The translations under genes and the position numbers were made by a program. Under the pieces are notes generated by a model, which had not been told where the DNA came from, ran no database searches, and was given only the letters and a program-made list of their open reading frames with translations. Below are positions 2,139-49,875 of a stretch of 64,000 nt of DNA, piece by piece. This DNA is from Phallusia mammillata (Eukaryota): the NCBI GenBank assembly GCA_965637545.1, contig OZ281499.1, forward strand, positions 16,182,001-16,246,000, read 5' to 3'. Within the stretch, counting starts at the first letter, position 1. Every line of letters starts with the position of its first letter.

Positions 2139-2266
2139 AGGCAGTGCGGGAAATCCATCCAAATGTGCTGGAGATCGCATATACAAAGGAAGTTGGTGAT
2201 TGCTTGAAACATGCGCCCGCTAGAAAAGGAAATCGCTTGTCCTTCAATTCAAGTTCGCCCGCTTGA
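2139..2266 (+). pseudogene. possible terminal exon remnant of a DUF4806/BEN-like protein
   Basis: After acceptor ttttgcag it reads (E)AVREIHPNVLEIAYTKEVGDCLKHAPARKG..., resembling the C-terminal 'W/CLKHAPxR' motif I associate with DUF4806-type proteins. I could not link upstream exons in frame. Confidence 0.3.
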
Positions 2267-3582: not shown

Positions 3583-3741
3583 CAGTGGTGGGATTCAGCC
3601 GGTTCTATAGAACCGTCTCAATAAATTTTATGAGATCAGCGAACCGGTTTAAGTTACTGGTTACTGTCCATGGACTTTTTGTAACATACCGGCGGAAAAA
3701 TAGGACTTTTGTGATAGAAAACAAAATGAATTCCAACACTG
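3583..3741 (+). mobile_element. short hAT MITE, family A (CAGTGGTGGGATTCA TIR)
   Basis: TIRs CAGTGGTGGGATTCA / TGAATTCCAACACTG. 8-bp TSD GGTGTGCC at 3575-3582 and 3742-3749. Related copies at 24396 and 38979. Confidence 0.9.
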
Positions 3742-4102
3742 GGTGTGCCACAGCGCTTCCCGAATTACAACAAAACAAAGTTACGTTTTATTGACGAGAC
3801 AACTAAAAAAAACAAGATAAAGCTATTTGGGGAATAATCATAGATGCAAAGTTTTTTTTTTTTAATATGAGAATAAATAGTCTTTGGGCTGACTGTGAAC
3901 GGCGTTTAAATTTATTACAACCTTTGAAAATAACACCACTTCTACTTATTTTTCTGCTTGCACAGAAACGGTTTATTTAAAAAAACAAACAATTGTGCAT
4001 TAAAGGAAGTGGTCCCCAACCTTTTCACAAGAATGACTATTAGATAAAATTGCCAAGTCTACAATTTTCTTTTCTAAAAGGTCTACCACCCTGATGGGAC
4101 TT

Positions 4103-11740: not shown

Positions 11741-11873
11741 CCAAGCGTGACTATAAGGCTCATTAGCTGAGTCTCATTGCTGCAGCATGCAAGCATAGTA
11801 GAGTATACTTATTTAAAGGCAGTTGTTGAAATATCGTTTGCACAAACTACGAAAGTTACCGTTGTAAACTATT

Positions 11874-28900: not shown

Positions 28901-31900
28901 GACGCTGCAGCCGCTATCGAAGTATACGTTACCCCGTCACCTAGGCAACGAACAGTAAGCAAAATATATTACAGATTCTAGCAGTAAATGAAAAGCAGTA
29001 GAAATCTAAATAACCTGAAGATTTGTTTTGAAACGGAATTGTTTTGAAACGGAATTGTTTTGAAACGTTGTGCGTTTCGTTGCGAAGTTTGACGCCATTA
29101 CTGCTTGCATAATTGATTTGAATTTACACTAGAAAAGGAAATCACCTAATCGATTCGACCAAATTACAATTCGATTACTAGACAAACAAATTGCTTGAGG
29201 CAGCTTACATTGAATAAAATCTGCTGGTCGAAATCGTTTTCTGCGACTTAAATATTAAAGTTTTAAATATATATCAGCGTTCTTTTTAATACCTCTTTAA
29301 TGGATAGATAAATTGTCATTTGCTTGTTATAGGCAGAAACTATTAAAAAGTCCTTTATTTGCAGATTGTATACACTGTTACGGCAAAGGAGGACGTTTTA
29401 GTGGAGGGCAAGGTCGTCGTGTCTGCTAACGAAAATCAGGCGGTAATTCGTTTGCACGTGACCAGTCAAATGTCGCCACGCTCTCATATTACTGCGTATT
29501 ACGTCACACCGATCAGTTCAGGTTTGTACATTTGTCAGTTGATGGTTTTCTCCAACACTCATTGCGCTCCAGGCCTATTGAAGTTGTAATACTAAATTTA
29601 ACCGCCTTCCGAACCGAATTAAACCGAAATAAATGTCCTGCGCTGGGATTTGAATCCAAGACTGCTGGTCTGCAGCAGGACGGGCTGGTCCCAGTAATAA
29701 GTTTAAGTTTATCTCAGCTATTTTGTGCAATAAAGTGGTTTATGTTTTCCGTCAAAAGATATAACAAAAGCAAACGGCAAACGTTCAAATAGTGTTATCT
29801 TGCCAAAAGTTGCTCATTTTTCACAATACTGCCATGGTTTGTGAATGTAGGTAACGCTTTGCAGCACACATTAAATTTTTATCAGGAGGATCTTACATCA
29901 CTGCTGACTCTGCGGTGCTCCGTGTGGTGGAAACTTGTCAAGGAACAAATCCAGAACTGCAAATCAACTTTCCTGGGGACCTACTTCCTTATCCAGGCCA
30001 AGAGGTAAGAACTCCATTTTTTACATTGAAAGATGATAGTTGGTAGCATGCATAGAGCTGGGTGCATAACTTTTCCTGAAACGTAAAGCTTTTCATAAAT
30101 CTTTAGCAAACAAGTTTCAACGATTTTACTTTCAACATTTTGTAAACATATAATAAGGAGCGTATATATTTTTTGATCAACAAAACAATATAAATTAAAC
30201 GATTGTTTGGAACACTGTTCATACACGATCTGTTCATAAGTTTAATGACGAATATAACGGCCCAAATAGACGTAAAAACGACATGAAAAATTAACCTCGC
30301 GTGCCAACGTTTTTCTAAATAATAGTGGTTCGTGCCAGCAGATATCAGTAAACCAGAGTGTTTTGTGCACGTAAGGCTGAATTTTATAACAATGGCATGA
30401 TAAAAACTATAAACAAGCAGTGTAACGGGTTTAACTGTCACTTCAATATAAACACGCGAATCTGTTGGCGTGCCATGAAAAACCACCTCGCGTGCCAAGG
30501 TTGGCACGCGTGCCAGGGTTGCCGATCTCTGTAATAAAGTATGTCGCTTTTTACGTCTATTTGGGCCGTTATAGTCATGATTAAATTTAAACAATTATAT
30601 TTTGTCTTTTGTTGATATTTAAATGTGACAGAGCTGATCAAATCATTCTAATGGTCCATATACCCAAGCAATATTTTTCTGTTGAGTATTAAAATAAACG
30701 AGCTTACTGCAACCTACCACAAAGAAACCTACTATCTCTTAAGCTTGAAATCGGTGTCAGAGGTCATCCATCGGCTTATGTCGGCCTCACTGGTGTCGAT
30801 GTCGCTGCTCTGTCGCTGAGGAAAGATTTCTTGGGTGAAAACGAGAGTTCTTCGTCCAACTCGAGGTCAAACACCTTTAACATCCTCCGCTCATTTTCCC
30901 TGGAATGCAAATCCCTGTCTATTCCATCACCACAGTATGCGTTTAATGCCGTCGGTAAGTGTTAATTTATGGCTGCCAATAAATAAGTTTTTTTAAGTAA
31001 GTATTTGGAATTCTACGCCAGTCCCATTGAAGGCACCATACCGCATCAGCCGACAACCAAGTATTTACCAGCATATGGCAAGGCGTAGGCTGGAAAAATC
31101 TAGCCTGCGGTGGGACTCGAACCCACTCCTGTTGTGGGTTCGAATACTGTGATTTAAAAATTAGTGGGCCGTGATCGCTGGTTTGCATAGACGATTCAGG
31201 GCTGATCCCAGTTATGAATTTATGTTCATATTATTTGGAATTCTATTTTAGCTCATAGTACATAGTTATCATCAAATTGAGAATACCGTACAGTGCAGTA
31301 ATACAATTACTGCAGGTCGAACTCTTGCCTCCTCCGTCACCAATGGCGTCATCGATGCGAGCAGTTCAACGTGTGGTGATGTCACTGCGAAACGTCGAAG
31401 AAAAAGAGATTTGTTTGGAGATTCTCAGATGATGATACAAAAAGGTAAGAATGGCGTCACAAAGTGTGCTAAGTAACGTCACATTTAAGTAATTGCGATG
31501 ACGTCATTGAAAAAAGTGAATTGTTTTCAGTTTTTTAACGTCATATTAATTTATATCGGCATGTGGCAAAACCCATAACAACCACCTAGTGACGTAGGAG
31601 TAACAATGCAAGACAAAATAATATTTCTATGTCCACAACTTATTTTTGTGTAGCCGAAAGATACTATGGAAGTGTTTACGAATGTTGCGAGATCGGCTCG
31701 TTGGACGTATCAAGCGTTGTGAATATACCGAGCGGCGAAAACTATTGTGAAGAACGCAGGCGGTCCTTGTCTCTGACAGAAGAATGTGAAAAAGCATTTA
31801 TGTCGTGTTGTAAAGAGGCTCAGTGTCGAAGACAAAACACCAATAATGTGGAAAGATGTGTATCTGAGTAAGTCATTTTTATATGTCATTCAAATCTGTA

Positions 31901-34900
31901 TCTAAAAATAGACAAAAAGTAATACTGCTGTATGTAAATTTGACCAATAATAGAAGTTCTTAGAAGGCTTTCGAAAAAATAATTGCTGCTGTTTTTTAAA
32001 ATACCTAAATAACTTCTTTGAATAAAAAAGTATGTAATTTGAAGTATGTACCTGTGCCTTTAAACTTTACACAATGACGTGTTGGTTTGTGCAGTGACAT
32101 CAGGGCCAGGGGAGTTTTTCTCGTCCCGGGGTCAAACAGGGTCGGAACCCCGATCGAAGTGCAGAGAACTGAACCGTGGTTACGAAGAGATTTTGATGAA
32201 ACCTGGTTTTCTGTTGACTTCAGACTTGGGTGAGTTAAAATCGTTTCAAGGGTTGAATTGAATGTGTTTTTGTCAAGTGCGAGTACCGGAAAAACTCCTG
32301 TCCAGGGTTCGAATCCCACCACAGTCTAGATTTTTCTAGCCTACGCCTTGCCATATGGGAATGCTTGGTGACAGGCTAATTCTTTATCATTCATTCAATG
32401 GGCCAGGTGTACTGTGATCTACATTTGAGTATGGCGTGATTGCTGGTCAATAGACGCTTCAGGGCTGACACCAGTTATGAATTTAGGTTCAACTTAACTG
32501 ATTATCGACTTGTTATTAACCTAAAATGGGCTGTGCAACTCTTATCACTGATTGGTTATATATATGTGATATACAATTAACATATTTAGACGGCGGGGCA
32601 CACCTTCATATATTTCAAAATATCATTAGGCCTGCCTTGTTGAGTAACAAACACGCTTACATTGAGTTAACAACATCTAGTAAAATTTGCAATTGATTCT
32701 AAGCGCATTGTTTGGTTGCAGGAAAAAAGCCCCGGGCGCATTAATTTGCTTAAACAACAAAATATGAAATGGTATTCCTCCCTTTCACGCGAACTAAAAT
32801 GGTTTAGCTGGCCATATAGTATTTAAAATCCAAATGTCTCCGCGGGCCACACAACCTTTGCTCAAGCAGCATCAGGCCCGCCCGTCGCAGGTTGCCTGTT
32901 GCTGAAAGATTTTAGAAGGGAAACACTTTTTCACCTTCTTGCCTCTTTAACGACATGGTGCACTTTGAAGTAAATGTGATAATATGAAATACCAAAACAA
33001 CTTAACTACTCATGCCAGGGGGAAAAAAATGGAAGTCTCGAATAAAAAAACGAGAAATTTTCATTAATTTTCTTTTTAACTCCTGTTGTTGTTTAATTTG
33101 TAGATCAAGAGGTTATACAACTCTGAACGGAACAAGCAGCCCAAGGATTCCACCACTTCCACATAGCATCACCTCGTGGTCGGTTGGTCTGTTTAGTTTG
33201 TCCCCGGTAGGTGGCGTAGCAGATCCAGATATGTTTCGTATTGCAAGATATACACTGATTTAAAATAAGTCCTTAAAGAAGGCTATACTGATTTTGAGCC
33301 GAGCCTCGACATTTTCAAACACTTTGATTTCCAGTAAAGTGTACAAAAATCGTATTTTGAAACTGTCAAGTCTGTTACGCACAAAGTTGTACTTTTTATC
33401 GGACTTTTTGTTCCTTTTTTTATAATTAGGACCCATTTCTGTCATATTTAATTAGCCTTAATTTGCACGAATATGTATGCTTACAACCAACAAGGTATGT
33501 ATATATATATGCTGCGTTTATTCCGTAGATCCTCATGTAGGCCTACGAAAATAATTTATTCTTGAAACTTATAACTTTAGTTGTACTTGTTACAGGAGAA
33601 CGGTATGTGTGTGATGGACCCATTTGTATTCAACGTCGAACATGCAATATTTATGGAGGTTTCTATACCAACTCGGCCTGTAGTGAGAGGAACAAAAGTT
33701 TCGGTGGAAGTTACAGTGTTTAGCTATATCGAAAGCAGAGTTACTGTAAGTATTAAATTATTTTGCAGCAAAGTTGGTATTGAGGATTTTTAATGTGATT
33801 TTTATGAACTAAATGATATTATAAAACACAGGATAGCTACAGTGGGTCCATATGACATAAAGGACACACAAGTTGTTTAAAATTTTGAAAACCTTACATA
33901 AGCAAAACTATAGGAGGTCAAATGGTTAATTGACTGGAAACGCTTGACCTTTTATTAGACATTAAACTAAATACCCCAATCGGGATACGTTTATGGTAGC
34001 GTAATGGGTTTAAATTTGACCAAAAAATAAACAAGGCATTTTGACTTCAGGCGACAATCGACATCGAGTCAACAGAAGGACTTTGCGGGAGTAAAACACC
34101 CGGAAGCTCGCCGGAAAATATAAACATTAACCCTTCCTCGGGCGGCATCCCCTCCTCTGAATTCCTTCGCTTTACTGTTATACCAGTTATAACCGGAGAT
34201 CTAAAAGTCAAGGTAAAACACTTATACAAAAAATCAAATGTTGAACCAAAATTCACAGCGTGTTTTGTCATTTAATCTCGTAGGTACAAACATTTTTACT
34301 GTGAAAGTCATCTAAAATATGTCTATGTGCTATTGGTCAATCTGTTATAAAAAATAACGCAGTGTATTCTACAATATGGGTTTTATTCTCAACGTTAAGT
34401 CGTATACATTGCCAAAGTTTGGTAATTAAAACTTTAAAATGGCCAAACTACTGGTAATTAAAACTTTAAAATGGCCAAACTACTGGTAATTAAAACTTTA
34501 AAATGGAACCTCTCAATCCATTGCTTGGGGTGAAACCCAATGATTCTTTTGAAATTATAGGATATTCAATATATGAAGGTACTCCAAAAAACGTTTATTC
34601 CAAAATCCTAAGCACAGATGGTTTTTTGTGAACTGAAAACTATCATTTAAATATATGCTACACTGCCCTTGTTTTCCAGGTTATTTTAAAAAAGAGACAG
34701 CACGGTGAAAGAAAACCATCGTTTGTGGACAAAGTTGTAAAAGTTCTTCAAGTGATTCCGGAGGGCGAGAAACAGCGAAAGGTCGAGTGGATACTGGTGG
34801 ACACGAAAACGACAAGAAAACGCAGACAACGACCTTCTTCTTCGACTACCACTAGAACTAATAAGAAAATTAAACTTGGGTTTCCATCGAACGCTATACC

Positions 34901-37900
34901 AGGAACGGAAAAGGTAAGGTTTTATTAATTACAGGTACCATTTTGCATCCGAGTTGTTTTTTACTTGATCAGAGTTTTATTGATTCTCAAATCGAGCGAA
35001 ACCTAAAAAATGTTAGCTTTTTTATTAGCAGATATTTTTTTAAAATGTTGCTTATAACATTTCATACTATGTTATAATACAGCTTTCTATGTTATAACAC
35101 AGAATTCTTTGGATTACTTATTTTTGTTTTAGCTCAAAAGTCAGTAAGTGTACAGCATAACCTATAAAAACGTTACTGCTGTAAAGCAATATATCGTGTC
35201 CAACTTGTGACTTTTTAGGCTACTATGCATTTGCACGGAGTCAGTTCAGCTGCCACTAAAAGTCCGACACCAAACGACGATGATGCAACGATTGCGCCGT
35301 ATTTGTATTCACTGCAATCCGCCTCTGTTAAGTAAGTATTCCTCATAAATACTCCTTATACAAGGGAGAACTAAACGATAAAATTTGGGTGGAACATAGG
35401 GGGTTACAGAAAATAATGTAACTCTTAATTTGAAAACAGGCTTTGCTGGGACCTTCTCAAATTCCATGTAACAAAACTAACTTAGTTATAAAGACTAGAC
35501 TAACTTTGCTTGATTGCTTTAAGCCTACTTTTACAACTCATGCCCATATACTCAAATGCAAATCCGATTTGTAGATTGGAGTATCTTCGACGTAACAACT
35601 TGCTCAATGGTCGCAACGCAAAGATTGACAGTTTAACGACCGAAGCTCAGAATGCTTATGAGGGATTGCTTTCGTTTATGCACGATCGAAACGCCGACAA
35701 ACCATTCACAGGTAAAAAAAATAACAAGTTTATTTTAGCATTTTGTGCCAAAACTTGTGGATTACTGATTGCGTAAATAATTCAAATTTACCCACAAGTT
35801 AGTTGTCAAAAGTTGATCCTCCCAAAGTTTGACCCAGAGGGTACCCATCATGGTAGTAAGTCAAATGGTCTGTATAGTTAGTTGGTAAATATAATATATA
35901 AAATGGAAATATGTGGAAAGACCACCTTTCTAGTTATATTTATTTTTTGCACTTGGTGACCACTAATTAGTTTAACGTTTTTGTCTTTCTTTGTTGGTTA
36001 AAACCAAGCTGAACGGGATTGGAACTCATAACAGAGCACTTGCGCTAACCACTCGACTATCTTGAAAATAATTCCTTCCATATGCTTTGTAATTTACTAA
36101 ACTTGCAGTAAAATTGTTACGTTTTTTTTGCAGCACAGCCCAGACCGCCACTGATTGGATTCTCATTCTCACCAACTCGGGCTTCGAAACCGGATTTATG
36201 GCTTACTAGCGTCACCTTGCGGTTGCTGGTGGAAACAGCGCAGTTAATCAACCCAGACCAAGTAAAATATTTTTGTTAGTAGTTTGTAGCCGAGTTGTAA
36301 GCTCGCCCGAAATTCGAGCCAGCACCCGAAAGTATAAGCCCGAAGCGAATGTGACAGCCCGTTTAAGCCCAGAAGTTTGATTAACATGGCAACTTAACAG
36401 TGTACAAAAGTACAAGTGTACAGAATGTAACAATAGACATTGGATTTAACACGACTCCTAGGGCTGTATGACATTGGGATAAGTCCAACTAGCCACTTAA
36501 CTGGGTAATTTTTTTATAATTACGGACACAAGTCCGTTCGATGAAAAAAGCCCAAACTCAGCTCAAATCCGACCCGAAAATCCTAGCCTGAGTTACAACT
36601 CTAGCTTGTATGACAAACATATCTAGAAGGTAGCTTCAGACGATATAGTTAAAAACAATTATAATTTCAATTTTACGTTTTAATGGAATATGCCAGAAAC
36701 ATCAAACTGTTTTAAACAAGCTACGGTTTGGGATTTAGTATGCATCAGCGATTAATATATTTGCCTGTATTTTGACGGTCTTGTTTATTTCGAAAAATCT
36801 TATCTTTTTCTAGAACATTCTGACTGGTTCTTTGAACTACGTTATGTCACATCAAGTAAAATTGCGTCGCTCTCTCTACTACGCAGGGTCGCCAGTGGCA
36901 ACTTCACGCAGACGAAGATCTGCTTGCAGCGATATCACGTAAAATACAATTGCAAATATTAGCACTGTTGGACTCACATTTTAATTGCATACAACACACA
37001 TTCTAAACTAAAACTATTTTGCCCCAAAAAGAATAGTAAAAAGCAGTTTGAAGCAATGTAATTACCTTTCATAGTTCTTTTTTTAGCACGGCTGTGGTGA
37101 TAACGAATTCTCTGTGTTTTGTGATAATGGACGGTATCATTATCCTTTGCTATGTTTTGATACGCAGGCAAAAATCGGATCGTAAAATTTGCCGACAACG
37201 CAGAAGAATTTCCAAGAGAAATTTGCGGCTTCCAAATTTCAATGAACCTTTGGATCGAAAGGTGCAGGAATGTTAATCTTGTGTATCAAATACTATTTCA
37301 TTTGAGAATTTTTAGTAATTTAGGTTTTCGTAAAAAATGTTTTAGTTGTACTTTACTGTAAAAAACATAATGGACAAAACCCACACTTACAAGTAAACGT
37401 TTAGCAATACAGACACTTGTTGTTTGTGAGCATCTAATGGCCAAGCCAGACCATCATATAATAAAAAAACAAATATGCTTGGATAGTGTTTTTTATTATT
37501 CTGGTTTAAAGCCACAAATACAATTTAGAATAAGAACGTTTTTGAATTTTTATAACCAAAAATTTGCAACGACGCTGTACGAAATAATTCCTAGGTTAAA
37601 ATGCATACATAACTTCGTTTACAATGTGAAAAAACATAGTTTTTTTGTCATACTCGTTATACTGTGCTTATACTGTATTATACTTGTGGCAGTTGTGTTT
37701 AGAGGGGATGTATCTTTACGTTTAAGATTTTGCGACCTTTTAGAGATCTCTTTCGCTTTGCCAAACTTTGTATTGTTTGACAGATTTACAGAACTTCCGT
37801 AATAACATCAGAATTGGACGCGGTTCGTAAAGCGTACACTGATTGGTCAAGCGGAACAAGACAACCAATCAGCACTGACAACGAAATCGACAGGTAATGT

Positions 37901-40900
37901 CTCGAAAAGTTTGTTATTTTGTCTATTGTGTTTTAATCAACTTCCATTGTGTTTTTAATCAAACTCGTGCCTAAATCAATAACTATTTGTTCGTGCTAAG
38001 GTTGCAGGCTTGGTCTTTGTAGACGTAGGCTAAATACCTTTTCGTGAAATTAAAACTAACTCTACTAAATCCTACATTTTAAATTTCCTTCATAATTGTA
38101 GTAATGGCAATACAAAACATATATACGGACCTAATTTCAGGTTTATGACTCTGGCATTTTTGTACAGCTGATTCTTATGAACGATGTAATGCAATAAACA
38201 TTTATGTAATCCCTCTTCTCGTCTTTTAACATTTAAGTATTTACCTCAATGTTTTGGCAGGGAAAAGCGAGTACTTAAGCTTAACGACAGAGCAGTAAGA
38301 ACTTCTCTTCGCTTGGGAAACTCCTTTATCGCCTACCACCTCAGAAGGGTAAGTATTGTTAGCAAATGTAGTAACAGTAGCAAATTCGTACTTTACCCCT
38401 TTCAATAAAGAAATCTACTAACACCATAACTCACGGCAGCCGCATTTAGCTAAATTTCGATAGGTGACGCAAAGAGCACAAAAACCTATTTAAAACAGTA
38501 TATTTCAAAAAATCTGACGGTTAGGGCTATTAGGGTTGGGGTAAGGCATTGCCATTAGAAATTCAATACAACTAACTTGAAAATTAGGTTCCTAATGCAA
38601 AAGTTTCAAAAACTTGCTTCACCCTAACCCTTTTTTAGCCGCTAAATTAACAATTCATTATTGCGCAACCTATCGAAATTTAAGGTCCGCCGTGAGGTGT
38701 TAATATAGCTTTATTTGTAATAAATCTCTTTATCTTACAGATCCATAGCACAACTGCAAGTCCAATCACCTTAACAGCGGCAGCACTCGCTACTTTTCGT
38801 ACGTCGGGGAGCAGCTCCCGTATTCTTCCCACACTTGATCGAACCATACTCACTTTCCGGCAAACTGAAACTTTCGATTCGGTGGTCACGTGGTACATTA
38901 ACGTGAGTGCAAACTTTTTCAGCATTATGCGCTTCAGTAAATTCTCTTCGGAGTCTGATTAGTAAGTTGTTATATAGGCAGTGGTGAGATTCAGCCGGTT
39001 CGCACCGGTTCTATAGAACCGTCTCATGAAATGTTATGAAATCAGCGAACCGGATAGCATTACTGGTTACTGTTGATGGACTTTTTGTAACAGAACCGGC
39101 TGAAAATATGACTTTTGTGATAGAACCGACTGAAAAAAAAAAAAATGAATCCCACCTCTGTAGTGGGTCGTTAGCACTTGTGATCCCAATAGCTTGTATG
39201 TAAATGCCACAAGTAGTAAGCTGAAAAATACTGATACTTGATGATATAATTCTGGATGATTGATTTCAAGCGTCTAAGATAATTTTGCATACACTTTAAT
39301 GTAGCTGCAAACTAAAATGATGAGAATTTTTTTCTGTTACAAATTTAGTTGTTAATGTGTGTTATTTCGTATACGAACGTAATTATAAACTAAGAATTAA
39401 TACAGACGAATCTGGTTAAGAGCATCACCATTTTGTCAAGCGTTTTTATGCAATTATCCGGATTATGCGATAATTTGGACGATTTTCCTAACAAATATCT
39501 TCAGTTAGGATTAACGATCTATATGCATCAGGTAAACAGATTGAGAATGGGGTCTATGCTTTGGAAATTAGTCATGCATACGTATTGCAAAAATTAAATA
39601 AATTAATTGGGGTTATTTTGTGTTAACGTTCAGTCGAACGGAAGGAGTACAGCGGCTGGAAGTTTAACAGCCAAGCAGGAAATACAGATGGCGTCCGCTA
39701 CAGTCGAAGCTACCGCATACCAACTACAACTAACTGCGTTAAGAGGTGGCCGAGTCGGTAAAACGTTTGTGTATTGACTTTACAAATGCCTAACTGGAAG
39801 TGTAACTTAGTAACATACTTTACCAATATCGAATGTAAAAATGGCGATTTTATGTTTTCCTGATTTGTAGACATTTCCTCTTTTCAAAGGCTAATTTGAA
39901 AATGCGAAGAAACTTATCTGGGGCACGTTTTTATCTCATATTAAGTTGTAAATTCTTTTTTTTCCCCCGCGACTGCTCAATTTAGATGTACTTATTACTT
40001 TGTGCTTTTAAAGTGTGTTTCAAAATTGAAAATTGTTACAGAATTATGCTACACATCTTTGGCTGGCATAGGCCTTTAATACACACTTAGATTTAAACAA
40101 GAATCACACGTTGCTGTATCGTTTATAAGGTTTTTCAAGTGAGAAGTATGCAAACTGGTTGTTTAAAAAACGAGATGCGAACAACCACTGGGTGACGCTG
40201 CGGGACGGTATAGCAGCAATGCAAGCACTAGGCGCTTACGTGGCAAGAAATACTGTGGCCAGTCCACTCCGTGTTGAAGTAAGAACATATTTAATTTTTG
40301 ATATTATATTTCCTTATAGTAGTTTTGTTGCAAGTACATCTATATTTTTTGACAAACTCAGTTTTGTATTTACTTTTAAATTTTATTGAAACAAGTTTAA
40401 AGTAAAATATTAAGTTTTTAGTTTGACAAAACATTGTATTTATTTTTAAATCGAATTAAAACAAATTTGCATTAGAAAATAAAGGTTGTTTATCAGTTTT
40501 GACATATCTGTATTCTTTACAGACGTTTTGTTTAACCATCAGTATTTAATTTGTGTAAACTGTAAGTAACATTTGTTATTAGTATTGTCCACTTAATATT
40601 GACAGATAAAGACAAAAAATACCAAGCATTGCGTCTAAAAATAATACTTTTGCAGCTTGAAAATCCAGAAAGTTCTGCGCCAGTGGTCATCAATCCTGAC
40701 CACGTCGAACGCCAGGGGGCGACCGAGAGTCGTGTTTCGCTTCCTGTCACAAACAACGAGGTTTCCATGACAACTGTTGGCCGTGGACAAGCCTGGTTAG
40801 AGGTAACTACCCACTTTATATTTTTCCTTAACATCTTATTATTTGCCGTCTTTAGTTCTTTAGGTCGTTAAAACGTGTTTAGACCAGTGGTTGTCAAATT

Positions 40901-43900
40901 TTGCGCCAACGTCCACCTGGTGTCATTAGCAATCGTAAATAGTAGAGGTGAACTTATCCGAATTGTGCAGGGCACCTAAAAACTTCATTGGGATTCGTCT
41001 TTGGGTGCGTCGTGGGTTCGAACTCCGTGAAAAAATTGAAATGGGCTAAAGGGGCAGGGGAAAAATCGTTTGGAAAATATATCTTTAAACGTACAATCTA
41101 TGTTATTTGCGTAAATGTTTTTACCATATAAGATACTTTTTGCTTGAAACTCTGAACTGATAATCTGGCATTATTGTCCGTAAAAATATTTAAGTTTTGT
41201 TAGGAAAGGGGAATTTTTAATTCAACTATCCTGTTTAGGGTTCGGTATAAAACTATTTAAAAATTAAGCGGTCCAGAAAAAGAGTGAGAACCACGTGTTT
41301 AAATAAACACTTTTATTTACATTCCTGCTAATTATGTCTTTAAACTATTCAGCTACACCCAAAATATTTTTTATATTTGGTTACATTTCATTTAGCTCCT
41401 ACCTTTCATAGGGTCGGAAAATCTGCCTAGAGTATTTTGCCAGACATAAAATGTTTACCAAACGTGGTTTAAATGTTTAAATAATGTCACATATTTTGTA
41501 GCTTGACATGGAATACAACGTTGCAACGCCTAACGTAAGGTCAGCCGGACGACCTTCAACATTTTCATCTGTTGACTCCAGTGATTCTTTTCAGTCTGTG
41601 GTCAGTGTTTGCCCGTACGATCTGTCAGTCGAAGCCCAGAATATTCCACCACTGGCTGAATGTAAGTTAAAAAATCAATGCTGGTTTATTTAAGTTGCTA
41701 GCAGATGCTTCCAGGTTTTACTTGTTAAGGAGATTTATTACTAAAAACTGTTTGGCCTACAGGAGGAATAGTATCAATTAAAGCCTTTTTTCGGAATAGA
41801 TGTAATTCTCAGATCCTAATTTGATAAAACTAAAGCATACACCTGTTTTTGTTATTTATTTCCTCACAGAATAGCTCACAAAATTAGATAGGAATCAAAT
41901 AAAAGTCATTTACAAATCGGTGGTAAAATATTATTATTCTTCAGTATTGGTTTAAGTTAAACTTTTTTTTGCAGTTTCATCTGTGGGGACAGCCAGGTTG
42001 AGATCATCGCAAGCTCGGATAAGTAAAAGTCTTTACGTTCTCGATGTTAACGTGAGTTACATAAACCCAACTACAAGTGAAGAGGATGGGATAAGCACTT
42101 ATGTAGTGGACGTGGGCTTGGGATCCGGTGTCGAACCTTTCCTTGATGACCTTGAAATGGTAAGTTTCGATCAGTTAGTAACAAAGATAAAGATTTATTT
42201 TGCTGATCACATCTTGTATCTTTGCATTTCTTTGTATTGGTTGGTGTAGCCATCTAACGGCACTCCAGTTTGTTGGGAGTAACGTGTTGAAAAGCCCTGT
42301 TTCACCAATTCTGTTGACTGACACAACTAAGCATAAACCACAAGGGAAACTGGGCAAAAACAACCAGCTACACTGATGAGACCTTATAGGTCGAAACAGT
42401 GTGCACTGTCTGCGGCTTACTTATCATTTATTGGTTTAATAATTATTTATGTTGTATTTCTTTGTATTGTTCGCTCGAAGAGTAAAATAGAATGATTAAC
42501 GAATAAATGAAACAAGCATTTATAGCTTGGATAATTGGCAATTTACATAGCACACACGAATAGTAATCACCACAAGCAAAATAGTAATGAATGCGGTACA
42601 ATTAACGAATCACGTGACTGTGGAATGCGCGTACGCGATTACTGCCTGAAGGACAGTACATGAAGCGGAACCACAACACCTCCCCTTCGAAGATCAGAAT
42701 CCCCCCTCAGATTAGAAGTGAAATCGCTCGGGAGGTTTACGCGACCTCTTAGTTCGTCGTGGATTGTCGGGACCGAATGAAGGAGAGCTACGATTCAGTG
42801 GCATGTCTGAATCTGCACCAGCAGTAGGAGCCTGCGGAATACTTTCTTCCGCTCCCGGTTCCAAATCCTCGTCGGACGCGTATCGAGCGCGTAGTTGGTC
42901 GATATGACGTCTCCAATTTGGACCACGTGGAAGAACTTTAACATGAAATGTACGACTTCCACACAGTTTAATAATCGTGGCAGGAACCCAGCGAGCATCC
43001 TCGGTACGTCTTGGACCAAGATACAAAGCGTAACATGGGTCTCCAATGTTGAAAGAAGTGATGTTCACGGGTTTTCGTGTTGCTTGCACTTGCTTACGTT
43101 GCATCAGGTGTGCTGGCGAAGGCAACAGAGTATCTATTTTCGCCCGAATTTGTCTGCCGTTAAGTAGTTCACTTGGTGAAAATCCACTGGCGTTTGGAAT
43201 ACGCCTGTATTGCAGTAGAAACTCTTGCAACGCCTCTTTAGGAGGTTTAGAAGACTTCTTAAGTGCCTTTTTGAAAGTTTGCACTAATCGTTCTGCAGCG
43301 CCATTTGTAGCAGGAAAGTACGGAGCTCCGGTCAGATGAACGATGCCCCTTTGTTTACAGAAGTCTTGAAATTCGGCAGACATAAAAGCTTGCGCATTGT
43401 CGGAAACAATAGTATGAGGGTAACCGAAATGGGCAAAATCTTGTTCCAACAACTCCATAGTTGTTCTCGATGACATAGATTGCGTTTGGTGTATACACGG
43501 GTATTTTGAGTGAGCATCTATCATCACAAGCCAGTTACTTCCCAGAAAGTTAACTGCGTGATCGATGTGTAAGCGACTCCATGGCTTTTCCGGCATCATC
43601 CATGGATGTACAGGTGCCTTTGGCGGAGCGTTTTGATGTTCAGCACAAGTCTGGCACTTGTGGCAAAGAACAGTAATGTCGTCATCGATATTTGGCCAAT
43701 AGACTGCAGTTCTTGCCAGTTGCTTCATTCGTTGAATCCCAAAATGTCCTTGATGAAGGATCTGAAGAACAGCAGAACAAAGTGATTCCGGTATAACCAA
43801 CCGTGAACCATACAGTAGACACCCATAACTGGTGCTCAACGAATCCATAACCTTGCGAAACTTTGCAACTGGATCGTTGTATGCAATAGTAGATGGCCAA

Positions 43901-46900
43901 CCTTCTCTCGTAAAACGCATGACTTTGGATAAGGTTGGATCTTTTCCACTTTCCTTTCGTAGTAACGCTGAATCGGTGGGTTGCACTTGTAAACTAAGAC
44001 TGGTAATTGCACAAACAGTGTCGGTGTCATGTGCACTTTCCTCCCTGTCGAAGTCAGCATCCTCACCAACTGGTAACCGACTGAGTGCATCGGCATTTTG
44101 ATGTTGCGATGTCTTTCGATATTCAATGGCGTATTGAAATTGGCCAAGAAAAAGTGCCCACCTTGCTAAGCGATTTGCAGCTAGAGCAGGCGTAGCTTTA
44201 TTAGGACAGAATAATGCCAGCAGTGGCTTGTGGTCTGTCAGTAGAATAAATTTCCTACCATATATATATTGGTAGAATTTCTTCAGCGCAAAGATTATAG
44301 CGAGAGCCTCTTTCTGAATTTGGCTGTAGTTGCGCTGGCTTTTAGTTAGTGATTTGGATACGTTGGCAATTGGTCTCTCGCTTCCATCTTGATAGCGGTG
44401 AAACAAAACTGCTCCAATTCCAACATTTGATGCATCGCAGGAAATGCCAATAGGTAAAGTAGGGTCAAAATGTGTCAGAACTGTATCAGCTGACAGCAAT
44501 TCTTTCATTTTGCAAAATGCAGCTTGCTCGTTAGGACCCCATTCCCATGCAATGTTTGACCGGGTAAGTCTGTACAGTGGTTCTGCAACGCTGGAAAATT
44601 GTGATGGCAGAAACTTGCTGTAGAATTGAACGGAACCAAGGAAAGAACGTAAGTTTGAGACATCTTTTGGTGATGACATATTAATAACGGCATCCACCTT
44701 AGAACCTTTGGAAATGCCATCTTTTGACAAAATATGACCCAAGTATTCCACTTGAGGTAACGCAAATTTACATTTTTCCAAACGACAGCGTAGACCTTTG
44801 TCGTTAAGCCGTTGAAGAAGTTGGCGAAGATTGTAAACATGCTCTTCAGCCGTTGATCCGCTAACTAAAAGATCATCGAGATAAACTGTAACACCTTGTA
44901 GATCGCTTGTAATCTCTTCCATGATTGATTGAAAATAACCAGGAGCAGATGTTATACCGAATGGTAAAACATTTTGCAGTAGCACCCCACGGTGTGTACT
45001 AATAGCTAGTCGCTTTCGGCTCTCTGGTCCCAACCGGATTTGGTTGTAGGCATCAGCTAAATCAATCTTTGTAAAACCGTAACCACCACGCAACTTGCGC
45101 ATCAAGTCTTCTGGAAGAGGAAGTGGATGGCGGTGTGTAGATAACTGCGGGTTAACTGTTACAGAATAGTCTCCGCAAACTCGTATCTTGGCTTTACTTT
45201 GTGCGGGAAGTGGTGTCTTTCGTATAGGAACTACTGGAGTCCCCCACTCGTTAAATTTTGCCGGAGTCCAAATACCTTTTGCGATGCCAGCATCGTATGC
45301 TTGATTGACGTCATCCTGTAGAGCAAATGGAACAGGCCTTGGCTTGCAGAAAACAGGCTTTACGTCTTTGGTGAATTTTACTTCCAGTGCAAAATCCTTC
45401 AAACACCCCAAATCTTCCTTGAAAAGGTCTGGATATTCCTCGCAAAGCTTTTTGCAAGCACGTTGTAATGATGCGTCTGCTTGGTTGCTGGCGTCAGATA
45501 ATACGTTTACCTTATCGTCGGTACGATAAAGTAACTTGTCCAATGATATGCGCAACGCCTCGATTCCACATCGACCAAGTAAATTTAAATGCGGCATTTC
45601 GGAAACAAACATCGTAAGACTACATGTTGTTGTCCTATGTTTGACTTCAGCTTCGAATGCGCCCAGTATCGGCACCAGATGTTCCGTTGCAGAGTTGAAA
45701 CGCTGATTGGTTTCCTTCAAACTCGGTTTCCCAATTTTCTTCCAGAAATTTACAGAAATAAAATTTCCGCTTGTTGCTGTGTCAATCTCTAACAGACAAG
45801 CTTTACCGTTTATGTTGACGGTTACCTCGAGTTTTGGACTAATATCTGCTTCTGGCTTCATCGAAAGTAGCGAATTTACATGTTGAACTGGCAAAACAGA
45901 CGCTTGTTTCTTTCTGCAAACAATTTCCAAATGGCCTATACGTTTACAGAATTTGCAAGTGGCTCTTTTATAACGGCAATCGGGTGCCAGGTGATCAGGT
46001 TTTCCACATCGGTAACAAGTTGTATTCTTTCTAAACTTGTCAATTGTAGGTGTGGACGTATTGAAACCTTTCTTTGCATCCCGTACCTTGTGTACCGATC
46101 CGCGAGTTCCATACACGGTTTCCTTTGCAACCTTTGCAGCGTCTTCGGTTTGCATTGCAACTTCAATAGCACGTGTAAATGTCAACTCATCGGCGTTGAT
46201 TTTGAAGATTGCCTTTAGCACTGCTTCGTTACCTATAGAGCAAATGAACCTTGTACGCAACGCTTCGTCCAGCGGGTCTTTAATTGAAGGAAAATCGCAC
46301 GTGCCTGCGTCGTGACGAATGCGTGCAGCTAACTCTTGCACTGTTTCCCCGGGCTTGCGTTGCATGTTGCTCCAAAACTTAAAGCGTTCCCGTATAACAA
46401 ACCTTTTCGGATCGAACTGTTCCTTCATGAAACCTTCAATTTCTTTGATTGAAAGATCGTTCACAGTCTTGACTGGAGAGCTTTGACCAGCCAGATTGGA
46501 TAGAAGCTTGTACGTCACAGGGGTTTGATTGGTGAGAAAAACTTGAGCCATCCTCGTTTCTGGTACAGCATGTGCTTGTATAAACGTTGTAAACCTCGAC
46601 CAGTAGTCGTCCCACAGCTCCGATGTTGAGTCGAATGAGGCAAAGCTTGGCGTAGCAACGGAAGGTGCAGCGTTTTGACTGGAACCGGCTTTCTCAACTA
46701 AGGCGAGAATTAGCTTCATTTGTTCATCGTGGCGTCTTTGCTGCTCTTGTAGTTGTTCTTGCATCAGCTTTGCAATTTTCTCCATCTTCGAAAGAACTAT
46801 CTTCGATACCAAACTGCGTACAACGTGTTCAGTTGGTAGATCCCGTCCTCGTCGCCAATTAACTCTGTTGTATTTCTTTGTATTGTTCGCTCGAAGAGTA

Positions 46901-49875
46901 AAATAGAATGATTAACGAATAAATGAAACAAGCATTTATAGCTTGGATAATTGGCAATTTACATAGCACACACGAATAGTAATCACCACAAGCAAAATAG
47001 TAATGAATGCGGTACAATTAACGAATCACGTGACTGTGGAATGCGCGTACGCGATTACTGCCTGAAGGACAGTACATGAAGCGGAACCACAACAATTTAC
47101 ATGTAAATTTTATGTATATTTATATTTTTTAAAGATTATGTATCTTTCGTGCCCAATTTGGGCTTTATTTAAAAACATTCGGTTTGGGTGTTGTGGGCTT
47201 GTCATTTTGGGTTTTGACTAGAGATGTACCGAATATTCGGTTTGCCGAATTTATTCGGCCGAATCGCTCATTTGTGCAAAGATTCGGTTTCGGCCGAATA
47301 ATTTGTTGCGATCCGGCCGAAACCGAATCTTTTACGAACACAAATTTGAAGCGTAAAACGTGTCTTTGCTGCTTATTAAGCTCCACGCAATCTTTCACAA
47401 GCCCAAACATAACGAAAATCGCGTCGATTTTTACCTTTTTCAACACATTGTCGTTTTTCCCACTGTAGTCAAAAAAATTAGTAATTCATTGGCAGGTTGC
47501 CAATCATTCTTGAGGCAATTGTGAACCTCACAGAACTTAAATGAGGACGAAACAGAACTATTCTGCACTAATTGCCTGGTAGATAAACATTTTTTCATGT
47601 CAAACCCGTAGCGTACGACTTCGCGTGACGTCATAAATGATTCGGTTGATTCGGCCGAATTTATTCGGCAAAACCGCCGAATATTCGGTTTCGGCCGAAT
47701 CGAAATTTAGCCGATTCGGTACATCACTAGTTTTGACCCTAATTTTTGACCCGCTTGCAAATCTAACATAGCATTCTAATTCCCATTGGCGGTGATAAAA
47801 ACCTCGCCTAGACTTTATCAATAAATGGCCTTGTTGCATTTATAGGCGTCGCAATGTAGTCAATGCATTCTTCTTTTGTTCGTCAGTTATCAAATTCTGT
47901 TGAGAAATGGATTGATCATTATCGGCTTACCAAACGATCTGTACTGCTCTACATAACTGGTGGAAGAGATATCAAGTTTCGACTGACTTCAACAGATGAT
48001 CAATATTTTCCTGATTTTCCAGTCAGCGTTTATCCTGCAGCACATCCAGGTAGCACAATTTATCCAATAACTGAGTTTCAAGACTTTTGTGCAAATTATA
48101 GTAGAGATTTAAACCAGCAATATATGGCAAGTACAAGATTTTTGGTTATTCACTTTTCCAATTAGCCAATTTTTTTCTTGCGATTATTCGGAGTTTTAGT
48201 TTATTCGAAATGCGATTAACCAGAATAGTTCGTATTTCACATTAAACAGCTTTGAAACCCTTTTTTGTTTAGAACAACGTTGTACGACTTTCTACCATCT
48301 CCGTGAATCGTCCCTTAGTCTTTTGTGCTCCACCGATGACGTCACAAGTACGTCATCCAGTGACGTGTGCGCATGTGCAGCAGGGAGCGCGTGTCCCAAG
48401 TTCCTGAGCAAGAAAGACTCGGCTGCACTGAGTGGAAACAACAGAAAGATTGCCACATGTGATGCCGCGACTGTTTATGGTAGATTTCTTAATCGTTATT
48501 TTTAAATAATTTATGTAACTTTTAATTTAACAATATAAAGACTTTCACTCGAAAGATATTTTACAGGCAAATTTATAAGAACCCCCAATATAGCCATTTT
48601 TGACATTACTTACAACCGGGGTTGGCATGTTGTTTAAATAAAGTTACACAACGTCTTAAATATTTTGATTTTCTCTATTTGGGCCTGCGTCCTTATTTGT
48701 CATAGTAACAACAACTAGGCATTTTATTATTTTACCGTGGATTATAAATGCCCGCTCTCATTCTGAACACAAAGACTTTTTTTAGCTACATTAACACAGT
48801 AAAGTAGCTAGTTTAGATGACAAGGCCAGTTTTAAGTTGAGTAATTATTTTATTTATTGTATCAACTCTCCGAAAAATCCGTTTGATAGAAAAATCACAA
48901 TACGTTAGAAGAATCACCCGTCATCATTAGGTTTAGGTTAGGTCGAATTATGATCATAACCAGTCAGCCAACTGTCTTTAAAATGCGATATATATATATA
49001 TTAAATATGTTTCGGAATTAATATATTAGATCGATGGCAGTCCTGCTTATAGCCAAAAAACTACTTCTAGTTTACACACAAAGTACATTTGGATACTAAC
49101 TACTCGCAAAGGTGAAACAATGCGTAACAACCTCTAGCACGTTTTGCATACACTACTAAATTTAAATCTTAAAACTGAAAAAAACATGCTTTTGTCCACA
49201 GCGTACAGAATAAGAGTGGTAACCGAACCAGTTGACGAGGGAAAATGGATTAAGTTTGATGGCAATATTCGCAACAACTTTAAAAGCACCGGAGTTACTG
49301 ACATCAGAATTAATGAAAACCACACGTTTTGGGTAAAAGGCGAATGTGACGAAGGTACAAAATTCAGGCGGAACCGTGAATATCACGTGACTGGGAAGAC
49401 GGTGGTACAGGGCACTGACGGGTGAGTAAATGGATTCGTACGTTAACGTGTATGAATATAGCTGGATTGGTTGTAGGGTAAGCGTTTTCAGGGTGTATAT
49501 CATGAAACACCACATTATTTGCCGTAGTTTATTGTGGTAAAACTGATTTTTTTAACTTTGAAACACTATATATGGATCTGTTTATAAGTTTAATGATAAA
49601 ATTAACGGCCCAAATAGACGTAAAAAAGCGACATGCTTTTTTTTTAAACGTTTCGGCAAATGCTCATGCCATCATTGAATTGTTTATTATTTTTTGATTT
49701 GTGAATTCATGCTTTGGCTAATAAAAATTATTATGGCAGGGTCTACAAACACCTGCTTGATCATGAAGCCAGGATCGAATGGTGGCCAAAGGACAGGGAT
49801 TGTGGAAGTTGTCCAGAACCGAAACGATCTATTTGGAACTCTTTGGATTTTTACACACATATTATGCCATGTTAA
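19910..49875 (+). CDS. C3: complement C3/C4/C5-family protein lacking the thioester (C5-like features), 38 exons, 1898 aa
   Basis: All junctions GT-AG and in phase, total 5697 nt. Exons: 19910-19965, 22512-22659, 22839-23118, 23793-23863, 24726-24868, 25741-25881, 26284-26437, 26887-27081, 27411-27524, 28285-28425, 28844-28954, 29365-29521, 29886-30004, 30744-30954, 31316-31444, 31654-31867, 32095-32229, 33104-33206, 33596-33745, 34051-34212, 34680-34913, 35219-35331, 35575-35711, 36134-36261, 36814-36938, 37087-37261, 37784-37893, 38261-38348, 38741-38902, 39634-39757, 40130-40278, 40656-40802, 41502-41661, 41975-42159, 47887-48049, 48273-48479, 49202-49421, 49740-49875. Landmarks: signal peptide MKTSNVLCLVTALFMSAKG, IFIQTDRTVYRPGDTV, FFVQDYTLPTFDV, YYKPGLTF, VGLTGVDVA, beta/alpha KRRRKR, anaphylatoxin CC-C-C-CC, RRDFDETW, LPHSITSW, WLTSVTLRL, VEATAYQL, CTTFYH, anchor Cys cluster, C345C ending WWPKDRDCGSC...MPC*. 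The symbol denotes the family; orthology to C3 versus C5 is unresolved. Confidence 0.9.
20776..21278 (-). mobile_element. hAT MITE, family B, copy 2 (intron 1 of the C3-like gene)
   Basis: Reverse complement of 17876-18400 with a few substitutions and a 22-bp deletion between short CGCGGGCCGGAT repeats. 8-bp TSD GTCTTGTA at 20768-20775 and 21279-21286. Confidence 0.95.
21870..22395. mobile_element. hAT (Buster/Charlie-like) MITE
   Basis: TIRs CAGCGGTTCTCAACC / GGTTGAGAACCACTG, GGGCCA(C/T) subterminal motifs. 8-bp TSD GTCTAAGT at 21862-21869 and 22396-22403. Confidence 0.92.
23131..23471. mobile_element. hAT (Buster/Charlie-like) MITE
   Basis: TIRs CAGTGGTTCCCAACC / GGTTGGGAACCACTG. 8-bp TSD GCTTAGTC at 23123-23130 and 23472-23479. 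Inserted 12 bp after the exon-3 donor. Confidence 0.92.
24396..24575 (+). mobile_element. short hAT MITE, family A copy
   Basis: CAGTGGTGGGATTCA...TGAATCTCACCACTG, homologous to 3583-3741. No matching TSD visible. Confidence 0.8.
27952..28042 (+). mobile_element. truncated 3' end of the TAGAGATG/TAGTGATG-TIR MITE family
   Basis: Similar to 47640-47729 (ATTCGGTTGATTCGG...TTATTCGGCAAAAC...GCATCACTA). Confidence 0.6.
29025..29067. repeat. 16-bp tandem repeat (~2.7 copies)
   Basis: GTTTTGAAACGGAATT repeated at 29025, 29041 and 29057. Confidence 0.85.
31016..31231. mobile_element. tRNA-derived SINE-like element with its 5' part inverted
   Basis: Flanked by 14-bp direct repeats TATTTGGAATTCTA (31002-31015, 31232-31245). 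The first half is the reverse complement of 32300-32405 and the second half is colinear with 32410-32492. Confidence 0.7.
32270..32492 (+). mobile_element. tRNA-derived SINE-like element
   Basis: Pol III B-box GGTTCGAATCC at ~32306, followed by a body and tail shared with 31016-31231. Confidence 0.65.
34421..34506. repeat. 32-bp tandem repeat (~2.7 copies)
   Basis: GGTAATTAAAACTTTAAAATGGCCAAACTACT at 34421, 34453 and (partial) 34485. Confidence 0.9.
38979..39160 (+). mobile_element. short hAT MITE, family A copy
   Basis: CAGTGGTGAGATTCAGCCGGTT...TGAATCCCACCTCTG, homologous to 3583-3741 and 24396-24575. Confidence 0.8.
42366..42417 (+). ncRNA. minimal type I hammerhead ribozyme (Penelope-like-element style)
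   Basis: Stem I 5' AGCTACA; core CTGATGA (42373-79); stem II GACC-ttata-GGTC; GAAA (42393-96); stem III CAGTG-tg-CACTG; GUC cleavage triplet ending at C42410; stem I 3' TGCGGCT (5 Watson-Crick pairs, 1 G-U, 1 mismatch). Confidence 0.8.
42450..42678 (-). repeat. 3' LTR of the Gypsy element
   Basis: TGTTGTATTTC...CCACAACA. On the minus strand it is preceded by the PPT GAAGGGGAGG (42679-42688). Confidence 0.95.
42712..46812 (-). CDS. Gypsy gag-pol polyprotein (Gag with 2 CCHC knuckles, protease, RT, RNase H, integrase), 1366 aa
   Basis: CYRCGKPDHLAPDC and CKFCKRIGHLEIVC knuckles; protease LEIDTAT; RT KIDLADAY...LPFG...YLDDLLV; RNase H CDASNVGIGAVL; integrase HQGHFG..CHKCQTC, HIDHA, VSDNA, NGAAER. 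The order PR-RT-RH-IN is Ty3/Gypsy. No stops. Confidence 0.97.
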   Translation of the reverse strand: MVSKIVLSKMEKIAKLMQEQLQEQQRRHDEQMKLILALVEKAGSSQNAAPSVATPSFASFDSTSELWDDYWSRFTTFIQAHAVPETRMAQVFLTNQTPVTYKLLSNLAGQSSPVKTVNDLSIKEIEGFMKEQFDPKRFVIRERFKFWSNMQRKPGETVQELAARIRHDAGTCDFPSIKDPLDEALRTRFICSIGNEAVLKAIFKINADELTFTRAIEVAMQTEDAAKVAKETVYGTRGSVHKVRDAKKGFNTSTPTIDKFRKNTTCYRCGKPDHLAPDCRYKRATCKFCKRIGHLEIVCRKKQASVLPVQHVNSLLSMKPEADISPKLEVTVNINGKACLLEIDTATSGNFISVNFWKKIGKPSLKETNQRFNSATEHLVPILGAFEAEVKHRTTTCSLTMFVSEMPHLNLLGRCGIEALRISLDKLLYRTDDKVNVLSDASNQADASLQRACKKLCEEYPDLFKEDLGCLKDFALEVKFTKDVKPVFCKPRPVPFALQDDVNQAYDAGIAKGIWTPAKFNEWGTPVVPIRKTPLPAQSKAKIRVCGDYSVTVNPQLSTHRHPLPLPEDLMRKLRGGYGFTKIDLADAYNQIRLGPESRKRLAISTHRGVLLQNVLPFGITSAPGYFQSIMEEITSDLQGVTVYLDDLLVSGSTAEEHVYNLRQLLQRLNDKGLRCRLEKCKFALPQVEYLGHILSKDGISKGSKVDAVINMSSPKDVSNLRSFLGSVQFYSKFLPSQFSSVAEPLYRLTRSNIAWEWGPNEQAAFCKMKELLSADTVLTHFDPTLPIGISCDASNVGIGAVLFHRYQDGSERPIANVSKSLTKSQRNYSQIQKEALAIIFALKKFYQYIYGRKFILLTDHKPLLALFCPNKATPALAANRLARWALFLGQFQYAIEYRKTSQHQNADALSRLPVGEDADFDREESAHDTDTVCAITSLSLQVQPTDSALLRKESGKDPTLSKVMRFTREGWPSTIAYNDPVAKFRKVMDSLSTSYGCLLYGSRLVIPESLCSAVLQILHQGHFGIQRMKQLARTAVYWPNIDDDITVLCHKCQTCAEHQNAPPKAPVHPWMMPEKPWSRLHIDHAVNFLGSNWLVMIDAHSKYPCIHQTQSMSSRTTMELLEQDFAHFGYPHTIVSDNAQAFMSAEFQDFCKQRGIVHLTGAPYFPATNGAAERLVQTFKKALKKSSKPPKEALQEFLLQYRRIPNASGFSPSELLNGRQIRAKIDTLLPSPAHLMQRKQVQATRKPVNITSFNIGDPCYALYLGPRRTEDARWVPATIIKLCGSRTFHVKVLPRGPNWRRHIDQLRARYASDEDLEPGAEESIPQAPTAGADSDMPLNRSSPSFGPDNPRRTKRSRKPPERFHF
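46840..46857 (-). promoter_or_regulatory. primer-binding site complementary to the tRNA-Ser(GCU) 3' end
   Basis: Minus strand TGGCGACGAGGACGGGAT. The plus strand ATCCCGTCCTCGTCGCCA matches the known ...ATCCC(A/G)TCCTCGTCG-CCA end of animal tRNA-Ser(GCU). Confidence 0.8.
46866..47094 (-). repeat. 5' LTR of the Gypsy element
   Basis: Identical by eye to 42450-42678. Confidence 0.95.
47219..47729. mobile_element. hAT (Ac-type TSD) MITE with (ATT)CGG/CCGAAT subterminal repeats
   Basis: TIRs TAGAGATGTACCGAAT / ATTCGGTACATCACTA. 8-bp TSD GTTTTGAC at 47211-47218 and 47730-47737. Confidence 0.92.

Follow-up and report, generated by a model that had tools for sequence, protein, structure and literature searches.

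A C3-like gene and its transcripts

The window analysed here, a 64,000-nucleotide stretch of DNA from the ascidian Phallusia mammillata (GenBank assembly GCA_965637545.1, contig OZ281499.1, positions 16,182,001 to 16,246,000 of the forward strand; coordinates given without a chromosome are those of the window), carries on its plus strand a complement C3-like gene that lacks the thioester. The gene spans 21445-49875 and comprises 38 coding exons, from which a 5568-nt coding sequence of 1855 residues can be rebuilt with no internal stops, in agreement with a sequence-only reading of the same DNA that had proposed an intact 38-exon open reading frame retaining the beta/alpha site, the anaphylatoxin (ANA) and the C345C domain. 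This thioester-less C3-like gene is real, intact and expressed, and we consider it likely to be the third-species orthologue of a thioester-less C3 paralogue present across ascidians, whose likeness to complement C5 would be convergent.

Ten of the exon junctions in the model derive from RNA contigs and the others from homology, frame, length and splice signals; only tentative assignments can be given for exon 1 (21445-21514), the exon 2 acceptor (22523) and the signal peptide. When the Ciona intestinalis protein XP_026692819 is compared with the window by tblastn, its residues 23-1862 map collinearly onto 22513-49866, and the model protein is 39.6% identical to it over 1813 columns.

Sequencing runs of the same organism were screened by the share of sampled words of the stretch 33500-41000 that they contain. 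About one fifth of these words are present in the RNA-like runs, matching the expectation for exon-only cDNA, and two other runs, with more than 90% present, are genomic. Among the low-share runs, the RNA contigs of four, each belonging to a different study, were mapped on 34550-40450 (5.9 kb), where in all four runs they skip ten introns, every one of them GT..AG and at the proposed position (34914-35218, 35332-35574, 35712-36133, 36262-36813 and six more). Because the contigs skip these introns at exactly these places, the gene is transcribed and spliced as proposed, and the ten introns of the predicted exon chain are confirmed. The 11 RNA-supported exons, assigned to domains below, form a single open frame of about 487 codons over 34680-40278. 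An alternative 5' splice site with its donor at 39745, 12 nt upstream, appears in one of the four runs, stays in frame and shortens the TED by four residues; contigs lose rare isoforms.

Domain architecture

The predicted protein has an MG1-MG8 core, an ANA domain following an RxxR site, a C345C/NTR module and the corresponding tree placement (see below), by which it is a member of the C3/C4/C5 subfamily. Within the MG core, the Pfam matches to MG2, MG3, MG4, A2M_BRD and A2M are weak but collinear on successive exons; the Ciona orthologue carries all of these domains plus A2M_recep, and the window protein is collinear with it over the full length. A furin-type beta/alpha site, RRRKR, is read by translation at 31393-31407; its aligned counterparts are RKKR (Ciona) and RQRR (Clavelina lepadiformis). 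The ANA exon (31654-31867) encodes the six canonical cysteines in the order CC..C..C..CC plus two extra, and both of the latter are also kept in the Ciona and Clavelina orthologues, giving eight in total. A basic residue about 17 residues past the last ANA cysteine is conserved in all three proteins, referred to hereafter as the trio. The Pfam ANATO score of this exon, 17.6 bits, lies under the cut-off of 21.4, and it is the sole ANATO match in a whole-genome scan. Further downstream, the exon at 33596-33745 encodes the A2M domain of the MG7 region (Pfam A2M, 25 bits).

The next part of the gene is covered by RNA contigs exon by exon. The CUB exon that precedes the TED (34680-34913) contains a basic stretch with RKRR, and the first TED exon (35219-35331) contains PNDDD-ATIAP at 35270-35299, without Cys and without CGEQ. 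The two TED exons that follow (35575-35711 and 36134-36261) encode a conserved KPDLWLTS helix that corresponds to STWLTA of C3. The TED exon with the catalytic-His column (36814-36938) has Thr at 36901-36903, directly followed by RRRR (36907-36918), and a conserved Cys at 36925-36927, and the TED-insert exon (37168-37261) has a second conserved Cys at 37187-37189, adjoined by RQRRR at 37190-37204. The remaining TED exons lie at 37784-37893, 38261-38348, 38741-38902, 39634-39757 and 40130-40278. Taken singly, the TED exons miss the Pfam TED model, and a single TED exon finds no match in the PDB; the orthologue TED alone obtains marginal PDB matches, without preference for C3 or C5.

The anchor region and the C345C/NTR domain are encoded by the exons at 48273-48479, 49202-49421 and 49740-49875 (stop included), as identified by profile HMMs. 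The Pfam NTR model reaches 20.7 bits on one exon, against a cut-off of 21.9 that the Ciona orthologue passes with 49 bits, and a custom C-terminal HMM scores the three exons at 82, 71 and 53 bits. Thus the proposal of a C3/C4/C5-subfamily protein without thioester in an invertebrate chordate, here an ascidian, stands, with furin site, ANA and C345C all present.

Loss of the thioester and the catalytic histidine

The codons at 35285-35299 encode ATIAP, and the spliced junction reads ...SASVK|LEYLRR, as had been predicted and as translation and RNA contigs both confirm. The register of this segment relative to C3 is ambiguous: a gapless alignment, as initially proposed, places ATIAP under GCGEQ, whereas MAFFT places PNDDD (35270-35284) there, followed by an 8-residue insert. 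The absence of the thioester is independent of this choice, since Cys is absent from the spliced protein from about residue 937 to about residue 1209 (about 130 residues on each side of the site), which makes a thioester impossible in any alignment register. In the MAFFT alignment, the window gene and Ciona have Thr in the catalytic-His column and Clavelina has Pro, so that the histidine is missing as originally noted. With neither the GCGEQ motif nor the catalytic His of a thioester-containing C3, covalent attachment is impossible.

A hidden exon could in principle restore the motif. Neither strand of 26131-48265 has coding potential for Cys-x-Glu-Gln, so that no alternative exon of this kind is concealed there, and within the intron 35332-35574, for which the absence of a GCGEQ exon had been claimed, no contig of the four runs uses another exon.

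A conserved lineage in other ascidians

A phmmer search with a 70-residue stretch of the A2M domain (33581-33790) against 1.84 billion representative proteins matches Ciona intestinalis XP_026692819, an 1868-residue 'complement C3-like isoform X2', for which other isoforms bear the name 'A.superbus venom factor 1-like'. CGEQ is absent from all Ciona isoforms of this gene. A homologue search seeded with the Ciona protein yields a 'complement C3-like' protein of 1871 residues from Clavelina lepadiformis, with 41% identity to the product of the window gene; that product itself has no entry in the searched databases. At the thioester site, Ciona reads TTNTIAQPLYQLQS (TIAQ), compared with DDATIAPYLYSLQS in the window gene, and Clavelina reads DDSATIAPYL, in which ATIAP is identical to the window gene.

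The pairwise distances within the trio are about equal, at about 40% identity. Its members share full-length collinearity and domain order, the replacement at the same site, a polybasic, two-Cys insert in the TED at the His loop, and a clade with 100/100 support. The insert differs in length, with about 60-70 residues in Ciona and about 30 in the window gene. Each of its two cysteines, which are among 26 that are invariant in the trio, adjoins a conserved polybasic site (RRRR-S-x-C and C-R-x-R-R). The RRRR and RxRR sites inside the TED are conserved in all three ascidians, with cleavage predicted from sequence only. Around the former thioester, conservation is among the highest in the whole protein: identity is 45-46% in the N-terminal half of the TED and 51-53% in the His-loop insert region, compared with about 40% overall. 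This pattern points to a maintained, remodelled domain and not to decay, and the loss of thioester and His common to the trio is older than the divergence of the three ascidian lineages.

An AlphaFold2 model of the Clavelina TED, computed from an 8-row alignment including canonical TEDs (pLDDT 56, pTM 0.55), is all-helical and gives TM scores of 0.56-0.61 against isolated C3d/C4dg in Foldseek, where the top matches are all TEDs, namely those of C3, CD109, C4, A2M and C5. The model supports retention of the TED fold and does not separate C3 from C5.

The thioester-less C3 lineage is therefore not new, with members already present in Ciona and Clavelina. The novelty implied by the sequence-only reading is unsupported because orthologues exist in RefSeq, the outcome that the reading itself had named as telling against it. 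C5-like invertebrate C3 isoforms without a thioester are described in PMC8960428. According to PMC5465252, which cites Hibino & Nonaka 2013, Ciona possesses a 'novel third C3 gene' that is expressed in the endoderm at early stages, a statement made there for Ciona only. XP_026692819 is probably the product of that gene.

Other C3-family and MACPF genes in the genome

By tblastn with reference proteins, the six other TEP loci of the genome are sorted into two CD109-like genes (chromosome C1:36.18M and chromosome C4:9.65M) and four C3-like ones, the latter on chromosome C5 at 2.55M, 5.50M, 5.53M and 5.59M (loci C, D, E and F, respectively). In all four chromosome-C5 genes a splice donor closes the MG8 exon, and the next exon carries the C3/C4/C5 anchor motif (..LCRCAEGGCPKCR; C.CAE..C), followed by conserved C345C exons; their ANA-like region has fewer cysteines than that of the window gene. 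GCGEQ and the catalytic His are both present at loci C and E, which provides the second, thioester-bearing C3 for which a genome search had been suggested. The statement that ascidian C3s retain the thioester is thus valid for the canonical paralogues only, of which this genome has two loci, and not for the thioester-less trio.

Locus F (chromosome C5:5590725-5600724) is a close copy of E, with terminal branches of 0.04 and 0.14, and reads PAGDGESNM, compared with PAGCGEQNM in E, within a TED exon match at chromosome C5:5594230-5594400 on the minus strand; Tyr replaces the His. It would represent either a second, independent and young thioester loss in this genome or a young pseudogene. Taken with the canonical loci, this indicates that the genome carries thioester C3 genes as well as the window gene, and that the thioester appears to have been lost in it twice. 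At locus D (chromosome C5:5506207-5506404), a TAA occupies the Glu codon (GCG*Q), which may reflect a pseudogene or an assembly error.

A whole-genome Pfam search had made the window gene appear to be the only C3 with ANA and C345C, as the TED model matched the six other loci and not the window, and NTR matched nowhere near the other loci. This idea was rejected, given the anchor and C345C exons downstream of the four chromosome-C5 loci; the apparent uniqueness arose because the six-frame Pfam search is too insensitive. Of 30 GCGEQ-coding sites in the genome, the 20 outside known loci were translated. Among these, the site at chromosome C4:9879195 (GCGEQNM) was the single plausible candidate for an extra TEP, and it is a chance match, with no other TEP similarity in the surrounding 3 kb.

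Canonical ascidian C3 genes are represented in the literature by Ciona C3-1 and C3-2 and Halocynthia AsC3. Those of this genome share with the window gene the subfamily, the anchor motif C.CAE..C, the C345C domain and the RxxR site, and they differ in having kept GCGEQ and His, in the smaller number of cysteines in the ANA-like region and in a far greater similarity to the C3 of amphioxus, octopus and vertebrates.

MACPF exons, proposed earlier as a search target for C6-like partners, are present on chromosomes C3 and C6. Only four MACPF loci are detected in the 240-Mb genome, with exons at chromosome C3:24.62-24.63M and at chromosome C6:16066891. We note that the latter exon (chromosome C6:16066891-16067067, plus strand) carries a YGTHY signature, scores 39.8 bits and precedes the thioester-less gene by about 137 kb on that chromosome.

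Phylogenetic placement

A maximum-likelihood tree (LG+C20 PMSF, 29 rows, 1648 columns) was computed from the trio, the partial proteins of the four chromosome-C5 loci, amphioxus and octopus C3, vertebrate C3, a tetrapod C3-like clade and C4, with CD109/TEP proteins as outgroup. The C3 family separates from CD109/TEP at 100/100, and the trio falls outside a vertebrate C3+C4 clade supported at 100/100. Support for an Olfactores grouping is 62/90. Word-indexed homologue searches recover the two orthologues, CD109/TEP proteins and bacterial A2M and, when seeded with a frog protein, the tetrapod C3-like clade, canonical C3, C4 and amphioxus C3, with no complement C5 among the matches.

In phmmer searches of the PDB, the Ciona and Clavelina proteins match human C3 and cobra venom factor best, with 255 and 221-232 bits, followed by complement C5 (226 and 189) and C4 (198 and 195). 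CD109 reaches 107-123 bits, and CD109, A2ML1, TEP1 and A2M together span 46-123, such that the scores for C3/C4/C5 (189-255) are about two to four times higher.

The trio shares with vertebrate C5 the beta/alpha RxxR site, ANA and C345C, as well as the lack of thioester and catalytic His. It differs in being more similar to C3 than to C5, in the extra conserved furin-type sites and insert within the TED and, for the window protein, in an ANA domain with eight cysteines. These comparisons make orthology of the trio with complement C5 unlikely, and its likeness to vertebrate C5 most likely reflects convergence. Of the two possibilities left side by side by the sequence-only reading, a convergent analogue is thus supported by the position of the trio outside vertebrate C3+C4 and by its higher scores against C3 than C5, and an older C5-like lineage is less favoured.

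In the same tree, a large tetrapod clade annotated as 'complement C3-like' or 'venom factor-like' has GCPEQ in place of GCGEQ and is the sister of canonical C3 at 100/100; some of its entries, from macaque, dog and elephant, bear the name 'complement C3'.

Other features of the window

The 5.7-kb intron 42160-47886 contains an antisense Ty3/gypsy-type long terminal repeat retrotransposon (42712-46812, minus strand) with an intact gag-pol open reading frame of 1366 residues comprising zf-CCHC, RVT_1, RNase H and integrase domains. The GC-rich block at 42-47 kb is due to this element. An intronic repeat at 38884-39277 attracts hundreds of RNA contigs, with a summed depth of about 300-10,000, in the four runs, and represents a highly expressed dispersed, SINE-like repeat outside the mRNA of the gene. 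A hammerhead ribozyme candidate at 42350-42395 on the plus strand scores 18.7 bits against the Hammerhead_3 gathering score of 48.5 (E 0.17 in a 301-nt search); in an Rfam scan over the window, nothing reaches any gathering score. Upstream of the C3-like gene, a single open frame of 418 residues (11868-13121, plus strand) has a weak, sub-cut-off match of 21 bits to the BBS7 beta-propeller.

Alternative explanations

The lack of a thioester would be an artefact of the gene model if a missed or alternative exon supplied GCGEQ in the real transcript. The reads cover one 5.9-kb stretch and contigs may drop such isoforms, which leaves some room for this explanation; yet the joints at the ten introns are identical in all four runs, the region 26.1-48.3 kb encodes no Cys-x-Glu-Gln, and the RefSeq models of Ciona and Clavelina lack CGEQ at the same place, so that a gene-model artefact is scarcely credible. 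Nor does the gene resemble a decaying copy, that is, a pseudogene or transcribed relic with an eroding TED. Such erosion would be in keeping with the very long stem branch and with the failure of single TED exons to match the Pfam model, but it sits poorly with a frame intact over 38 exons and 5568 nt, with spliced transcripts in four studies, with three species that keep frame, 26 cysteines and furin site at about 40% identity, and with a lost-thioester region that is conserved above the protein average. We regard decay as highly improbable.

A more substantial alternative is that complement C5 and C3-C4 separated before the divergence of tunicates and vertebrates, and that the gene is a true C5 orthologue. 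Complement C5 is not among the tree rows, it is the second-best PDB match of the Ciona protein, and the chromosome carries a MACPF exon 137 kb upstream of the gene, each of which could accommodate an old C5-like lineage. However, C3 and cobra venom factor give both orthologues higher scores than C5 does, the TED alone showing no preference, and the tree places the trio, weakly, beside the canonical ascidian C3 genes. The study of Najafpour et al. 2020 (PMC7768046), which includes Ciona sequences, can be cited on both sides, as it suggests from tunicate c3/c4/c5-like molecules a duplication before 1R/2R but also attributes the tunicate copies to species-specific duplication. Moreover, thioester loss is recurrent among C3-like genes (PMC8960428) and is seen again at locus F (GDGES). 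An old C5 lineage is, in our judgement, unlikely.

Several points nevertheless weigh against a third-species orthologue of an ascidian-wide, convergently C5-like C3 paralogue. The tree was computed without complement C5, lamprey C3 and Ciona C3-1/-2, so that the case against C5 orthology is indirect; the stem of the trio is very long, at about 2.1 substitutions per site, and the sister relationship to the canonical ascidian C3 genes has a support of only 28/7. The structural model of the TED has a low confidence (pLDDT 56) and was computed from an alignment that contained canonical TEDs. The sequencing runs carry the label 'RNA? (a guess)', their RNA status resting on the exact intron-skipping joints. 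The match of XP_026692819 to the gene of Hibino & Nonaka 2013 is inferred, as are chain processing, ANA release and binding partners, the latter three from sequence alone.

Possible mechanism and significance

We suggest that a duplication event, which most likely took place within the tunicate lineage, was followed by one copy giving up covalent opsonisation. As in C5 or cobra venom factor, the activity of a thioester-less C3 would depend solely on proteolytic activation and on binding without covalent attachment. The secreted protein would be cut at RRRKR into beta and alpha chains, and furin-type enzymes would probably cleave the alpha chain further within the TED, at the conserved RRRR and RxRR sites, the two conserved cysteines of the insert holding the resulting TED pieces together. 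Activating cleavage could then release the ANA peptide, provide a non-covalent scaffold in the form of the large fragment, or do both. By analogy with the Ciona expression cited in PMC5465252, the role may be developmental, in the endoderm, instead of immune.

A stronger proposal is that the ascidian thioester-less C3 is a working C5 analogue, whose activated large fragment would nucleate pores of C6-like MACPF proteins. We consider this improbable; if true, tunicates would possess a module resembling the terminal pathway, either independently evolved or older than vertebrates, and the furin-flanked TED insert would be a switch or a released peptide.

The preferred reading, an ascidian thioester-less C3 paralogue with convergent C5 likeness, has precedents outside chordates. 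Peng et al. 2022 (PMC8960428) define C5-like structural C3 isoforms by the alpha-beta site and ANATO without thioester, describe the invertebrate thioester losses as recurrent, independent events in lineage-specific C3 duplicates, and provide functional data for the clam example, the razor clam ScoC3-like-3. Isoforms of the ScoC3-like-3 type share with the ascidian gene their origin as lineage-specific C3 duplicates in which the alpha-beta site and ANATO were kept and the thioester lost. The mollusc and arthropod isoforms differ in being independent events, whereas the ascidian lineage is found in at least three species and has its own TED insert.

In the accepted view, complement C5 is a vertebrate paralogue, and the present finding leaves that view unchanged. 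What it shows is that the thioester loss in this ascidian C3 paralogue is old and stably kept, in at least three species at about 40% identity, and is no one-off decay, and that it arose beside canonical GCGEQ-bearing C3 genes. A chordate example would thereby be added to the repeated, convergent 'C5-like' remodelling of C3, and the conserved polybasic, Cys-bearing insert, located exactly at the former catalytic-His loop, offers a testable feature of this lineage.

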